DNA of 63,489 bases, counting the filler, from Reticulomyxa filosa (Eukaryota > Protista > Foraminifera): NCBI GenBank assembly GCA_000512085.1. It is 20 parts of 20 records of this genome, joined end to end, with 100 filler letters (N's around TTAATTAATTAA, not from the genome) between each part and the next. Parts side by side here need not be neighbours in the genome. Positions count along the whole stretch, not along the records: positions 1 to 12,657 come from ASPP01018754.1; 19 more parts are not named here. One strand, written 5' to 3'. The stretch's first letter is position 1. Every line of letters starts with the position of its first letter. Positions 2,958-12,657 of the stretch are shown here, one piece after another. The notes beneath the pieces were generated by a model that had not been told where the DNA came from, did not search any database, and was given only the letters and a program-made list of their open reading frames with translations. The translations under genes were made by a program, and so were the position numbers.

Positions 2958-5546
2958 ATGAAGATTGGCGACTTTCGCAGTCCAAAATTCAAAAACGAGA
3001 GCAAATCAAGCTTAATATGGGGTCGTTTGGTGCCAACCTCACATTTGCACAAAGTGCTGGAACTGTCCTTAGACGAAGTAAAACTTGGTAGAGACAAACA
3101 AGCACATCTTAAAATCCGTGAACCACAAATTTCGAGTTTGCACTGCATTATCCGAAGAACTGCGACCAATCAACAAGCTGACAAAATCCCTTGTTGTGAA
3201 GTGATTGATTGCAGTATCAATGGAACTTATGTCAACAAAACCAAAATAGGAAAAGGACAGAAATGCAACATGTTTGATGGCGATGAGTTGATACTTCTCC
3301 AGCCATCCAAGCATCTCAAACATGGAAAGAAGCGAGGTCTATTTCTTTCTTCCAAAAAACAACAAAAAAAAGTTTATTTAATAAATGAAAACTATATGTT
3401 TTAAAATTTTTTTTTCGTATTACAGTTGAAATTTTTTTGTTTGTCAACCAATCAAAAAATTTTTGCTTGGATTGTTTGATTTGTTGGCTACAGAAAAAGT
3501 AAGCTTTTATTTTTACATGACAAAACCGCAAAAACAAGAACCCCCGCTGCTCAACCAAAAATACGAGTTGCAAGAAACATTGGGCACTGGACCAAATGCA
3601 GTTGTGAAGCTCGCGATCAATGTTTGTACTGGCGAGCGAGTGGCAATGAAGCAGATCGCGAAGAAGCAGATAGGACTGAAATCAAACACGGAAAAACTGG
3701 AAATCACAAGTATCATGAACGAATTGAAAATGTTACAAAAAACGGACCACTAAAAACATTATAAAAATTTACGATATTTTTGAGACAGCGAACATTTGGT
3801 TTGGCATTGGAATTGGCCGGTGGAAATTTGTTTCAGAGAATTGCTCATCAGAATCTTTCAGGTTGGTTTGTTTTTTCTTAAAGCATTGATTATTTAAAAA
3901 TTATTCTGCCACACACACAATGGAACAGAGGAGATTGTGCGAAAAATTATGTGGCAACTATTATCAGCCGTTAACTACCTGCATGAACTCAAAATAATTC
4001 ACGGAAATGTAAAACCTGAAAATATATTGCTTGTGAACGAAAATGCTTGGGATATCAAGGTTACTGATTTTGGTTTGTTACATGCGTTACAACTGGATCA
4101 ACAACCTGAAGTATCCGCGTGCAATGTGTCGTCATTCTTGGCACCGGAAATACTATCCAATCGAAAAATAGGTTTTTTTTCTTTCGTTTTTGTTTCTCTC
4201 TTTTTCGCTTTTTTGTTTGCAGCAAAGGCAAGGACATGGACTTGTCTTTGATGTTTTTTAACATGCATCGAAGATGAATGTGGGTTTGAAGTGGATTATT
4301 GGAGCATGGGAGTGACCATGTATTACTTGCTAACCGGACATTCACCCTATGACACGAAGGAGGGACATTTGCTTGATTTAATTAAATTGGGACGGTTTAG
4401 TTTCCCTTTACAGACGTGGCAGTTTGTTAGTATCTCTGCCAAGGACTTGGTGGAACACTTAATGAAATTAAATACACAGGAGAGATTTGGATGGAAAGAG
4501 ACTCACTCACATCCATGGATGCAGGCTATTTCCGCTTATCTTCCTCCCTTTCCCTCTTTAGAACAAAAAAAGGTAGATCTAACACCCCTTGAGCCGCCTC
4601 AAGAATTGCCTGAAGTAGAAGAAGTAATTCAATTCAAGCAAGACTCTGTGGATATTGACACACAAGAAAAGGAAAGTGTCAAGGAAAAGGATGCGAATAT
4701 CGATTTTGTCGTCACGGCAGCTGACATACAACCGGTTGAACACAACGCGTTGCCGTTGCAAAACGAAGTTTTAGAGGATGAACCAGAAGAACAAAATAAA
4801 GAAAACAGCAGCGGGGTTGTGAACATTAGCTCGCAGCCAATAGAAACTGGAGTTGTCAATGTGACATCAATTGAATTGAAATATGAAGGATTAACTAGGA
4901 AAAGAGTTTGGAATCAAAGTAACGACATAGAAATATTCGATTGTGGTAATATGGAAGACAATGCTATCGGGTCCCCTAAATCTAAAAAATCCAGACTTAG
5001 TAATAGCATCACTGTAGAAGAAGTTACGTTTTGCTTCATTGTTCTTTACGAGGGTGATTTTAATGTGTGTTGTGGGTTTACATTTATTAGCCACAAAAAT
5101 CACTTTGGATAACTCCATGGAAATCAATTGAAGGACATTCCGATATGCAGCTGGCTTTGCTACCCAATGCTAAAGAAGATAATGTGCAGACTGAATTAGA
5201 TAAAGAAGAAGTTGTGCCGAATATAACTCTCAATACAAATGAGGAAGAAATATCTCTAAATTTCAATGAGGAAGCAGTACCTCTTAAATTCAACGAAGAG
5301 GCAGTGCCTCTTAAGTTCACCGAAGAAGAGTTGCCTCTCAAATTTAGTGGAGAGGAAGTACCTTTCAAATTTAGCGGAGAAGAAGCACCATTCAAGTTTG
5401 GTGAGGAAGACGAGGGACTTAAGGTTATTGGCGAAGATACCTCTTTCAAGTTTGGTGGAGAGGTTGGACCACTTAAATTCAATGATAATTCAACACTCCT
5501 AATCAACATCGCAAATGTATTACCAGAAAATCAGCAAATTCAATGA
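2958..5546 (+). CDS. FHA-domain Ser/Thr kinase-like protein (Chk2/Rad53/Cds1-like architecture), multi-exon, probable pseudokinase with apparent frameshifts
   Basis: FHA motifs LGR..QISSLHC..DCSINGTYVN, then kinase motifs LGTGPNAVVKLA, VAMK, HGNVKPEN, VTDFG, FLAPE, VDYWSMGV and ISAKDLVEHLM. Phase-consistent GT-AG introns at 4172-4273 and 5023-5090. Two frameshifts near 3751 and 3800. Confidence 0.8.
5255..5480 (+). repeat. 27-bp coding tandem repeat (PLKFNEEAV / PFKFSGEEA-type nonapeptide) in the kinase C-terminal exon
   Basis: LNFNEEAV PLKFNEEAV PLKFTEEEL PLKFSGEEV PFKFSGEEA PFKFGEED ... SFKFGGEVG PLKFN in ORF 5145..5546. Confidence 0.85.
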
Positions 5547-9390: not shown

Positions 9391-10162
9391 TATACATTAG
9401 TTTTCAAAAAAAACAGTACACCAAAAAAAAAAGCGTCTTTATTGAAAAGAGTTAAAGTAAAAATAATTTTGTAGATACATAGAACAAATCACAGATTTTC
9501 TTTCCTCTGTGTGTACTATCTTATCTCTTGCATTTATTTGAAAGGTTATACATTCAATTTTTTTAGCTTAATTTTACATTATGCCTTTTTTTTTAACAAA
9601 AATTTTTTTATAAATCTCTATCATACTGTAAAGAAAAAATAATCCATTTAACAAACGTTTACACTTATGTTTAAAATAAGCTTTTATGTTTGATGCAATG
9701 ATATGCTGTCAGTTTTTTCCAGTCCTTTTTATATTTACTTTGCAGTTTCCACTTATCAGTTACCGTGTACTGTTTTTTTAAACTACTGTAGTTGAAATAA
9801 TTTCCAATTTCTCTTCCAAATACTTGATCAAGTATAATTTTGGTATGCATATATTGTGATTGAGGAGCAATTGCTGGATATCAAATATTTCGTGCTAAAT
9901 TTACTGTGCGTTTGGTCGTATCTTAAACTACTAAACCTTTTGATTTTCTTCAATGTAGAAAGTAGTAGAAACACAAAAATTAAGCACTTGATTTATCAAT
10001 ATTATTTCAAATAGTGTTTGCAAAAGTAGTCAACAAATAGTTAAAGACTACTTTTTCAAGATATTTGGGGGCGAAAAAAAAAGAGATTCTTTTGATAGCG
10101 TAGTTGAAAAGTCTTCATCATAAGACAGCAAAAAGGGGGGAAAAAAAGTTGAGTAAGAAAAG

Positions 10163-11408
10163 ATGGCAAAACGAGTGAATCGTCAATTGAAGAAACAATT
10201 AGAAGAGCAGAAAAACTTGGAAGAGGAGTTGGACAAACTTCAAAACGGAAAGGACCCAAAAGAATCATGTGCAGAAGTGATTAAATTTGTTCAAAGCACA
10301 TCAATGGACCCAATGCCAGACACTGGTAAGACTGAAGAAGATTGAGATATTTTTTGAATTGAAAAAATACCTCAAACACAAAAAAAAAACAATACCAAAA
10401 AAAAAAAGTAACTATTTTTTTAAAATTCTAATTTCATTTGTCTATTTGATTTGTGTACGTTTTTTTTTTCTTTTCTCCCTCTTTTCCCCCTTTTTTTTTA
10501 AAAGAAAAGATTATCTTATAACCATATGAGACGAAAAAACAAGAAAAAAGTTAACAAAAAAGAAAGACAGAATGTTTGTATTGATTTTTAAAACAAAACA
10601 AAAAAAAGAAAATAACCCGTTTACGGTTTGCTTCCTCGCCGGAACACAAATATTAGTGAATAAACAAGGCAAACATAAAAAAATTGAGGAATTAAGAGTT
10701 GGTGAAGTGATTCAGTGTCTTGTACCTACTCATGAATCGTTTAAAGAAAGTATTGACTGTGAAATCAAAGATATTCCAAATGTTATGACTGATGCTGTTG
10801 TGGCTGCTATCCATTCTTCAGTCTCATATTCTATTTGCAGTATCAAATATCGTAACTTGACAACAGTTTCTCAAAAATATATATTTTTTAAAAATTTATT
10901 TTATATTTTATTTCATGAATAAAAAGATAGAGAGAAAAGAAAGACAGTATAAAAGTTCTTTTTAAAAATTAAAAAAGGCGTATACGTAAAAAAAAAACTT
11001 TTAATTAAAAAAAAAAAAAATGAATAAACATTAAAACGTGTTAAAACAAAAAAAACTTTAACAATAATAACACATCTTTATATATTTGATATTTTTAATA
11101 CTAATTAGAATGAAGAACGCACAATTGAATGCACCAATGGTCATCCGATATATGTAAATAAAGAAGGATGGAAAACGGTAAGCGGCGTTTCCCATGAAAT
11201 GTATGATTTTAAAATCCAGAAACTAAAAGTTGGCGATCAAGTTTGTTTAGAAAGCGGACACCTTGCTCAAATTACCCACATTCATTCCACTTCTCTCAAA
11301 GAACCTGTCACCGTTTACAATTTGACCGCGTCTAAGGGTCACACCTTCTTTGCCAATGGTTTGTTTGTCCACAATAAAGGATTTTGTGAAGGTTGCATCA
11401 TTTTGTAA
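10163..11408 (+). CDS. G-protein gamma-like subunit with an inserted intein-like Hint domain and C-terminal CaaX box (exons 10163-10325, 10609-10865, 11109-11408; 239 aa)
   Basis: Introns 10326-10608 (GT..AG, phase 1, G|AA = Glu) and 10866-11108 (GT..AG, phase 0) join three ORF-track pieces into one open frame. Residues 1-61 are G-gamma-like (coiled coil, SCAEVIKFV, DPM, ENNPF). Residues 62-229 are the Hint domain (CFLAGTQI, IEELRVGE, IECTNGHPIYV, LKVGD, VYNL...HTFFANGLFVHN). The tail is KGFCEGCIIL-stop. Confidence 0.88.
10629..11375 (+). other. Hint (intein/BIL-like) autoprocessing domain of 168 aa, no homing endonuclease, split by a spliceosomal intron
   Basis: Cys1 codon at 10629; block B T-N-G-H at about 11133-11144; block F VYNLT; block G His-Asn at 11370-11375. 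Confidence 0.9.
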
Positions 11409-12657
11409 TTGGTTTCTTTTTTTACCTCTCTCTTGCCCCACCCTTTTTTTATTGACTGTCTTTTGATCTACATTGCAAAAAGTAAGCCACAACACTGTGA
11501 TGTGAATGGGTTTTTGTTTGAATCTTTCTTTGTTTTGGTTTTTTTTTTTGTCTCCTTTGGAAACAAAGGTTGTTTTTTTGTTTTGGTTTTGTTGGGGCTT
11601 GTTGTGATATGATGAATTTCCTATTTGTGTTTTTTGCCACAACAAAAACAAATTGAAAAAGAAAAAAGTGCATTTTCACCAGGGAGGTTAAGCAATGCTC
11701 AATGTATTGCAATCACTTGGTGCCATAACAGTTCGCAATTGTTTTGTTCATTTTTGGGTCTTCACATACTCATTTTAATGAAAGGTGTGCTTTTTTTCTA
11801 CAATTCTCCATTTTGCAACCAGCTATTCTATTGTTCGTTGTGAATTTACTTTTGCTAAAAAGCGAAACGATAGGATTATTTCTAATAAGAAAGGGTATTG
11901 AGGGAAAGCGCATTTTTAGTATCAATTGTAATAACGAGGACGGCAAACAATTTTGTTATAATAGTTTAGTGTTCAATTTTAATTTAGCATAGAAATATTG
12001 GGCTAGCGCACAAAATTGTAATAATTATGAAATTTCCGAATAACATAAAAGTATTTGGAAAATTTTTGTGCGGAAAGTAGCATGACATAAAATTTATGAT
12101 AATGGCTATTCCCTATTTGAAGATATTGACGCTGTAAATGAACAAACGAAAATTATAACAATTAAAATGTCTTTATACTCAATTTCAAATTTTGTTTTTG
12201 ACAAGTTTATGAGAATCCGAAATATACAGTTCAAATGTTACGACCGCATTACAGTCAGCCTCTGCGTGTAGTGATGAATATTAGGAGCACAGCATTTTTA
12301 AAAGTTTTAATTTATTTAATAAACTACACCTGTGAAAAGTTTATCAAAAATACTGTATGTTGTGGAAAAAATTAAACATATAAAATGACACCTTATAAGA
12401 TCAAATTTTCTCTATGAAAGCAATCAGTAAAACTATTTTATTTAAAATCTACAAGTATTGTAATTTTTAATGTGAACTGACCTTTTGATCATTATTTTTA
12501 TGATGGATAAAAACACGCTAAATATGATTTTGAAAATTGAGAATTATGAACATCAGGAATAGTTGGAGTCATAATGTACTCAAGATTGTTTTCATAAAAA
12601 TTTTTTTTGTTTTCAGATTCATTGTTTCTGTTTCATTATCAAAATGTAAGTTTACAA

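Follow-up and report, generated by a model that had tools for sequence, protein, structure and literature searches.

The stretch of Reticulomyxa filosa DNA analyzed here (the window, 63,489 nucleotides in total) carries at positions 10163-11408 of its plus strand a locus that an earlier note had described as a gene for a G-protein gamma subunit (G-gamma) interrupted by an intein-like Hint domain. The gene model presented below places a 168-residue domain of the bacterial intein-like (BIL) type inside a small G-gamma-like protein, just ahead of its prenylation box. The locus lies on contig C18754, and the R. filosa genome that was searched for relatives is the 101.9-Mb assembly of 50,809 contigs. 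We checked the exon model by reading the window from 9900 to 11700 and translating the three proposed exons, and every coordinate and count of the two-intron model in the earlier note was reproduced. The exons were queried individually, and all whole-protein analyses (fold, alignment, and profile) were run on natural full-length homologues. The parts of the gene are as follows, with the segments on either side of the Hint domain referred to as exteins:

10163..10325, plus strand: exon 1, with its ATG at 10163, comprising codons 1-54 and the first base of codon 55; its product is the coiled coil and second helix of the G-gamma-like body, to DPMPDT
10326..10608, plus strand: intron 1, GT at 10326 and AG at 10607-10608, phase 1, with an A-rich stretch ahead of the acceptor
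10609..10865, plus strand: exon 2, closing on a codon boundary ahead of GTTTCT
10609..10628, plus strand: end of the N-extein, E55-NNPFTV61, with the NPF motif
10629..10865, plus strand: first half of the Hint (BIL) domain, opening with Cys62 (TGC at 10629-10631) and block A CFLAGTQILV
10866..11108, plus strand: intron 2, GT at 10866 and AG at 11107-11108, phase 0, in the interior of the Hint domain
11109..11408, plus strand: exon 3, ending with TAA
11109..11375, plus strand: second half of the Hint (BIL) domain, with block B CTNGHP, block F VYNL...GHTFFANG, and the terminal His228-Asn229
11376..11405, plus strand: C-extein KGFCEGCIIL, with Lys at the +1 position (11376-11378), a Cys-rich tail, and the box CIIL
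11406..11408, plus strand: stop codon TAA, read in the sequence

The last base of exon 1 stands one into codon 55, ahead of GTAAG, and the codons (54, one split, 85, and 99) sum to 239 residues, composed of the 61-residue N-terminal part, the 168-residue Hint domain from Cys62 to Asn229, and the 10-residue tail KGFCEGCIIL. Within block B, Thr149 is encoded at 11133-11135 and His152 at 11142-11144, while the His228-Asn229 pair occupies 11370-11375. Read by rule, the box CIIL is a geranylgeranylation-type CaaL signal. Exons 1, 2, and 3 match residues 1-54, 56-141, and 142 to the end of uninterrupted homologous open reading frames (ORFs) with zero gaps, and the homologues read DPMPD(T/S)ENNPF straight across the junction of exons 1 and 2. 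Because the exons align gap-free to uninterrupted ORFs, both splice junctions are confirmed by homology. The acceptor of intron 1 (window 10560-10608) is preceded by an A-rich/poly-A run rather than a pyrimidine tract, and the same is true in all four copies of the gene that are described next.

A genome search with exons 1 and 3 identified duplicates of the locus as well as three further paralogues having the same parts in the same order (C28041 plus C11559/C16079, C28993, and C27723). The genome holds at least four copies of the gene. In all four, a phase-1 intron follows DPM(P/V)D(T/R/P) and a phase-0 intron interrupts the Hint domain at the identical point, with every intron running GT..AG. 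The four copies are under strong purifying selection, as judged from pairwise ratios of nonsynonymous to synonymous substitution (dN/dS) of 0.05-0.17 over ~235 codons with dS at least 0.9. With these copies, the gap-free exon alignments, and the above-cut-off Hint matches of exon 3 described below, the gene model lies well outside chance expectation. Exon 1 is 80-98% identical to exon 1 of the three paralogues (dN/dS 0.01-0.12), and between copies A and B it is only one residue apart although dS is saturated; the read-through peptide past the intron 1 donor exhibits no conservation between paralogues. We also considered whether the Hint segment might be removed at the RNA level as a cryptic intron. 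This idea was rejected, as there is no conserved in-phase GT/AG pair at the domain borders among the paralogues, and purifying selection on the Hint codons counters it as well.

The earlier note had placed the Hint domain between the G-gamma-like body and the CaaL box and had proposed to look for relatives that carry or lack the insert. An exhaustive HMMER run queried with exon 3, together with a family-profile search, identified 18 proteins with the full layout, and the paralogues share it; Hint-less paralogues were likewise found in R. filosa and are described below. Most full-layout proteins have 238-272 residues, the exceptions being one of 361 residues, one that is N-truncated, and a 342-residue R. 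filosa gene model. Four of their contigs were retrieved (JGI and Logan assemblies); each is 0.9-1.1 kb and contains an uninterrupted ORF, and according to the search table nearly all other full-layout relatives are on contigs of ~0.9-1.3 kb. These environmental contigs (JGI 3300030743 and 3300019268; Logan SRR8820976) are probably transcripts. Lys at +1 and a terminal CaaL are present in 18/18 full-architecture proteins, in two C-terminal fragments, and in the four copies, with P0044 ending CIL. In an alignment of 16 full-length members, the invariant positions are Cys1 in CF..GT, CTxxHP, FAN, His-Asn, the +1 Lys, the CaaX Cys, and the final Leu. The equivalent of Cys62 is thus invariant in this alignment and is found in the four copies too, and the catalytic residues for both cleavages are unchanged among members as divergent as 28% identity. 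The public model for the window gene (RFI_21520, here P0289) is mis-spliced and lacks exon 3, other public family models (P0283, P0007, and P0002) are mis-spliced or partial, and the names in use are "hypothetical protein", "YD repeat protein", and "intein splicing region domain protein, partial"; therefore, the layout is not visible in current annotation.

The inserted domain

Several Hint-type models match the full-length homologues, with Pfam and NCBIfam matches above their cut-offs. Exon 3 alone scores 30.5 bits against PT-HINT (cut-off 27.7) and 25.8 bits against TIGR01443 intein_Cterm (cut-off 15.6), and exon 2 yields weak Hint_2 and Hom_end_hint matches that start at profile position 1. 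When the family profile was compared with PDB sequences, the BIL2 domain of Tetrahymena BUBL came first (E 4.8e-18), followed by the Clostridium thermocellum BIL (2.9e-13), with canonical inteins at ~1e-5. For the fold analysis, the window protein was represented by the 239-residue homologue P0276, which is 74.5% identical to it over the exon alignments. Its AlphaFold2 model (mean pLDDT 81) has a confident Hint fold at residues 63-230, and Foldseek placed BIL2 (E 1e-13, target TM 0.86) at the top, ahead of the C. thermocellum BIL and, after it, mini-inteins. The first five ranks are all BILs, while Hedgehog appears at ranks 32 and 37. There were 65 PDB fold matches at E <= 0.001, and all 50 among the matches listed are BILs, inteins, or Hedgehog domains.

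The features of a type-A BIL are present, namely Cys62, T149-N-G-H152, His228-Asn229, and no Cys/Ser/Thr at +1. By the published definition (PMC4031507), the sequence thus identifies the inserted domain as a type-A BIL of 168 residues, with a Hint fold and no homing endonuclease. Accordingly, the Hint fold, Cys start, TxxH, and His-Asn that the earlier note had seen all stand, whereas its "intein-like" designation is corrected to a type-A BIL with Lys at +1. A canonical class-1 intein was rejected because the +1 residue is an invariant Lys rather than Cys/Ser/Thr, which excludes class-1 splicing. By analogy with characterized domains, the only chemistry left is BIL-type aminolysis, isopeptide formation, or cleavage. 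A mobile or selfish intein was similarly rejected, given the lack of an endonuclease insert, a single clade with the host family, and saturated dS between paralogues. A Hedgehog/Hog domain was rejected as well, since only 5-11 residues follow His-Asn, leaving no room for a sterol-recognition region, and the match to Pfam Hint (Hedgehog) is weak.

A separate observation concerns the AXH module of ataxin-1 and HBP1. Pfam AXH matches the first two thirds of the BIL domains in P0003, P0025, and P0134 (~64-216) above its gathering score (<=49.6 bits), and the family profile matches the AXH structures of ataxin-1 and HBP1 (PDB 4J2J, 1OA8, and 1V06) at ~1e-6, which is better than its matches to canonical inteins. 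On this evidence, AXH and the BIL-type Hint domains would seem to be related.

The host protein

The G-gamma hallmarks of the window protein are exteins of 61 + 10 = 71 residues, two N-terminal helices, DPMPD..NNPF, and CIIL. In the P0276 model, helices at residues 2-28 and 32-45 are followed by disorder, as would be expected of G-gamma on its own. The earlier note had argued that removal of the Hint domain leaves a normal G-gamma layout, and the spacing bears this out: with the flanks summed, the distance from the NPF-like motif to the C-terminus is 11-16 residues in the family and ~14-17 in the Hint-less paralogues. In mammalian G-gamma-2, 13 residues separate NPF from the end.

Hint-less kin in the genome include a 69-residue ORF on C26787 ending CVVL as well as ORFs on C12975, C10395, C688, and C20089. 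The closest Hint-less relative of the N-terminal part is a two-exon gene on C9443:1725-4856 (locus 1495-1611 and ~1700-1790) with 48% identity in exon 1. It reads ...EENPFHV RSHDGCCIL-stop, its product ends ...EENPFHVRSHDGCCIL, and it provides a natural "empty-site" comparator; its intron position differs from those of the Hint-bearing genes. The G-gamma family PF00631 is the best Pfam match of 3/3 Hint-less proteins scanned and the sole match for two, covering 2-67 of the 69 profile positions with E values from 5e-5 to 1e-3 and 19-23.6 bits (cut-off 27.1). Profile comparison connects the Hint-bearing N-terminal parts to these Hint-less proteins at 96.6% and E 4.8e-10. The N-terminal part of the window protein alone gave no significant Pfam match. 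Across the Hint-bearing N-terminal parts, PF00631 is the family matched by most (11/21), with coiled-coil families such as DivIC close behind (10/21). Among PDB profile matches, coiled coils rank at the top, and no PDB family other than transducin gamma is matched over almost the full profile (positions 12-57, though only at E 0.12-2.5). A search with the Hint-less G-gamma-like profile returned a single R. filosa protein (RFI_00639) and no named G-gamma relatives. A language-model search of a protein atlas, started from the N-terminal part of P0003, produced no usable match.

A single match in the assembly exceeds the PF00631 cut-off (62 bits, C15174:1-512), but it was rejected as a native G-gamma: this 512-bp contig is 90% identical to lepidopteran G-gamma-1 (Papilio machaon) and, from that identity, is insect contamination of the R. 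filosa assembly. A genuine G-beta gene is present on C9619 (E 1e-77 to G-beta-1 in the PDB), with at least four exons, one of which encodes 27 residues. It was located with a short degenerate pattern built on a G-beta motif, which gave eight matches versus none in the control, and was confirmed against the PDB; a WD40 route to G-beta was dropped after a genome-wide first look returned 14,689 candidates. There are several other G-beta-like loci, including apparently decayed copies on C34736, C35314, C40148, and C45344. The genome also contains at least 152 G-alpha exon matches above cut-off (377 candidates), and its signaling families are strongly expanded.

With regard to the G-gamma identity claimed in the earlier note, the hallmarks, the in-register PF00631 alignments, and the Hint-less kin all hold, while the curated Pfam cut-off was reached by no native match. 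We consider it very likely from these comparisons that the N-terminal part is a true G-gamma homologue. As no curated threshold was reached, we refer to it as G-gamma-like, with predicted G-beta binding and a family membership that is probable from sub-threshold matches and genomic context.

Origin, proposed self-processing, and competing explanations

To place the domain, a quick tree was built from 220 Hint domains (152 columns, with <=2 domains kept per non-family protein). The 18 G-gamma-embedded domains fall on one side of a branch and the 202 others on the other (SH-aLRT 93), and the embedded clade holds two deep subfamilies. Its nearest neighbors, with weak support of 76-79, are the polyubiquitin BILs of Tetrahymena thermophila XP_001012667.2 and of the foraminiferan Nonionella stella, together with one environmental sequence. 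R. filosa itself has a BUBL-like gene on C14659:3331-6606 (locus 600-1971), in which a ubiquitin ending LRLRGG is directly joined to a BIL (CFVAGT...VHN); after this BIL there is a Thr at +1 and then a second ubiquitin-like domain. The polyubiquitin-BIL layout is also seen in N. stella protein P0014, and the sole description of it that we found concerns Tetrahymena (PMC8616854). Because of the tree neighbors and R. filosa's own ubiquitin-BIL-ubiquitin-like gene, the simplest history suggested by the sequences is that a G-gamma gene acquired a BUBL-type BIL once and then diverged into two deep subfamilies. The arrangement would thus be old and domesticated, with a single origin from the BIL lineage of polyubiquitin (BUBL) genes.

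What such a domain might do can be judged from its characterized relatives. Type-A BILs form an N-terminal thioester and are cut at the C-terminal end by Asn cyclization, after which the freed amine may join the flanks; having His-Asn and no +1 nucleophile, they splice by aminolysis, and cleavage products dominate (PMC4031507). Tetrahymena BIL2 makes a Lys-epsilon isopeptide bond and can transfer the domain upstream of it onto other proteins (PMC8616854, section 2.4). In the R. filosa family, every residue needed for reaction at either junction is present and invariant, and both junction-flanking segments are disordered in the P0276 model. We infer by analogy that the precursor is self-processing. 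The BIL sits in the flexible C-terminal tail, with the NPF of the body presumed to bind G-beta on one side and the Cys-rich CaaL signal on the other. In the proposed sequence of events, an N-S acyl shift at Cys62, assisted by the block-B Thr and His, would create a thioester after Val61, and cyclization of Asn229 with the help of His228 would cut ahead of Lys230. An amine of Lys230 would then attack the thioester, either the alpha-amine post-cleavage, as in type-A BILs, or the epsilon-amine, as in Tetrahymena BIL2. The products would be a ~71-residue G-gamma with its CaaL anchor and the excised 19-kDa BIL domain. In competition with this, the thioester might be hydrolyzed, which would leave an anchor-less G-gamma body and a G-beta-gamma that loses its anchor; because hydrolysis would free such a body, the domain could set the share of G-beta-gamma tethered to the membrane. 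The autoproteolytic switch put forward in the earlier note is thus a hypothesis.

Conservation of the two junctions, together with the G-gamma spacing of the joined tail, points to the ligated, prenylatable ~71-residue G-gamma as the product most likely under selection; these two features of the sequences fit ligation better than one-sided cleavage. The +1 Lys is a likely acceptor because it is the only amine donor in most tails. A more specific variant, in which the epsilon-amine of Lys230 is itself the splice nucleophile, Asn229 cyclization then frees the BIL, and the prenylated tail ends up on an isopeptide branch, has by analogy only a modest chance of being correct. Lys-mediated splicing might also be gated by zinc or redox, as in Tetrahymena BIL2. 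Taking gene, self-processing, and origin jointly, we consider it reasonably likely that the locus is a functional three-exon R. filosa gene encoding the precursor of a G-gamma-like subunit.

Several points weigh against this interpretation. The Hint-bearing N-terminal parts score just 12-15 bits against PF00631 (best 15.4 vs. the gathering score of 27.1), and when compared as profiles with insect G-gammas they give a weak match (P 8e-4) that amounts to in-register support only. Block F carries Asn in the 16-member alignment, at a site where class-1 inteins have Asp. Lys also follows His-Asn in 96/142 motif instances of the closest non-family BILs, so +1 Lys is probably a trait of the wider BIL clade, tied to BIL chemistry rather than to G-gamma, and need not be specific to G-gamma function. 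Finally, ligation may be the minor outcome, given that cleavage prevails for type-A BILs in vitro (PMC4031507).

This last point leads directly to an explanation in which the domain is simply a cleavage switch, with hydrolysis of the Cys62 thioester irreversibly freeing the G-gamma body and G-beta-gamma from a prenylated BIL-tail stub. Such a switch would agree with the dominance of cleavage products among type-A BILs (PMC4031507) and the absent +1 nucleophile, and the tail, being disordered in the model, should be open to prenylation in the precursor. Yet an invariant C-terminal His-Asn is unneeded for N-terminal cleavage alone, and the summed extein-tail length stays G-gamma-like family-wide, which suggests selection on a joined product; we regard the cleavage-only switch as rather unlikely. 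Trans-conjugation in the manner of BUBL, with the thioester of the G-gamma body handed to a Lys of another protein, has a precedent in the closest solved relative, as Tetrahymena BIL2 attaches the ubiquitin-like domain upstream of it to ubl5 and a Ras GTPase via a Lys-epsilon isopeptide (PMC8616854). In the tree, polyubiquitin BILs occupy the sister branches, and R. filosa owns a ubiquitin-BIL-ubiquitin-like gene. In the family studied here, however, the N-terminal part is not ubiquitin-like, the invariant Lys sits in cis at +1, and a conserved CaaL tail would be purposeless, all of which render this alternative highly improbable. It is also improbable, albeit slightly less so, that the Hint fold is merely kept as an inactive spacer or interaction module and that the precursor is the mature protein. 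Purifying selection does extend across the whole domain beyond the catalytic sites, and the Pfam AXH match is above cut-off, but the invariance of all residues for both cleavages down to 28% identity is hard to explain without catalysis.

The remaining alternatives concern the host protein and the gene itself. If the N-terminal part were another short coiled-coil prenylated protein, its link to heterotrimeric G proteins would be spurious. Every PF00631 match being under the gathering score would fit such a protein, as would the nearly equal number of matches to DivIC-type coiled-coil families (10/21) and the coiled coils that top the PDB profile matches. Conversely, the PF00631 alignments span nearly the whole profile in register with DPL and NPF, profile comparison ties the N-terminal parts to ~70-residue Hint-less paralogues ending CaaX, and the genome has a conserved G-beta and many G-alpha genes with no other G-gamma candidate found in it. 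A protein other than G-gamma is accordingly unlikely. It is scarcely credible that the locus is an artefact, whether because it comprises two genes, is a pseudogene, or recently acquired a selfish intein. The public model RFI_21520 does join the exons differently, but uninterrupted homologous ORFs cross both junctions, dN/dS is low and dS saturated among the four copies, a homing endonuclease is lacking, and the embedded domains form a single clade with two deep subfamilies.

Neighboring genes, novelty, and known systems

Upstream of the locus, the window contains a multi-exon gene and an adjoining ORF:

2958-3401, plus strand: FHA domain, in the upstream multi-exon gene spanning 2958-5112
3463-3750, 3937-4248, and 4291-5109, plus strand: protein-kinase domain pieces of the same upstream gene, after the FHA domain
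5145-5546, plus strand: ORF with a tandem acidic repeat of ~9-10-residue units such as EEAVPLKFN

By its domain order, the 2958-5112 gene has a Chk2/Rad53-like layout, and the 5145-5546 ORF may be the C-terminal continuation of this kinase gene.

The prenylated tail of G-gamma holds G-beta-gamma on the membrane, and to our knowledge no comparable built-in tether device has been described in heterotrimeric G signaling. A conserved autoprocessing domain between body and anchor would offer a means of making, breaking, or re-routing this tether without an added enzyme. The author of the earlier note knew of no described intein or Hint domain in a G-gamma, and our full-text literature searches agree, as combinations of Hint, intein, or BIL with G-gamma, Reticulomyxa, foraminifera, or geranylgeranyl returned nothing relevant. 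The eukaryotic Hint contexts given by Burglin 2008 are Hog, Vint, and inteins (PMC2362128), and the ciliate BUBL BILs are one further context (PMC8616854). In the window gene, an autoprocessing domain of known type occurs in a new host protein and at a site that matters for function; after the polyubiquitin (BUBL) loci of ciliates, this would be the second setting in which a eukaryotic BIL has been domesticated. If splicing through the epsilon-amine of Lys230 were true, it would constitute lysine-mediated protein splicing inside a heterotrimeric G-protein subunit, and if it were gated, G-beta-gamma membrane tethering would be set post-translationally by an autoprocessing domain. With its short, simple C-extein and invariant +1 Lys, the family would also offer a small natural system in which to study splicing that uses no side-chain nucleophile, and perhaps a useful ligation tool.

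Among known systems, canonical G-gamma proteins (PF00631; transducin gamma and G-gamma-2) resemble the R. filosa exteins in their ~71-residue length, two N-terminal helices, DP(M/L), NPF, and Cys-rich CaaL tail, but the R. filosa tail is interrupted by a 168-residue domain, its PF00631 similarity is below the cut-off, and its G-beta binding is predicted only. The Hedgehog/Hog system is similar in that a Hint domain governs the lipid state of a signaling protein via a Cys thioester at the end of the signaling part. Hog domains have no terminal His-Asn, and a sterol-recognition region delivers cholesterol, whereas in R. filosa the lipid is expected from the CaaL box and 5-11 residues follow His-Asn. 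Class-1 mini-inteins (DnaB, RecA, gp41-1, and Prp8) share the fold, blocks A, B, F, and G, and the terminal His-Asn; unlike them, the R. filosa domain has no +1 Cys/Ser/Thr and shows no sign of mobility, and the sequence similarity is far weaker (~1e-5). Because +1 Cys/Ser/Thr is absent, a branched (thio)ester intermediate is impossible in the R. filosa domain. Bacterial type-A BILs, such as that of Clostridium thermocellum (PDB 2LWY, the second-best PDB match), are closer, having the Hint fold, N-terminal Cys, His-Asn, and no +1 nucleophile. The related prokaryotic matches differ, however, in being large proteins with several tandem Hint domains, whereas R. filosa has a small G-gamma-type protein with its BIL just upstream of a prenylation box. 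The best match in both sequence and fold, on a neighboring branch of the tree, is BIL2 of Tetrahymena thermophila BUBL1 (PDB 6Y75 and 6TMM), which likewise has Cys1, a CTxxH block B, FFANG..HN, and no +1 Cys/Ser/Thr, and is eukaryotic, nuclear-encoded, and domesticated. The two differ in their flanks: BIL2 has a ubiquitin-like N-extein ending Gly-Gly, a ubiquitin-like C-extein, and Met at +1, while the R. filosa family has a G-gamma-like N-extein, a C-extein of 5-11 residues ending CaaL, and an invariant Lys at +1.

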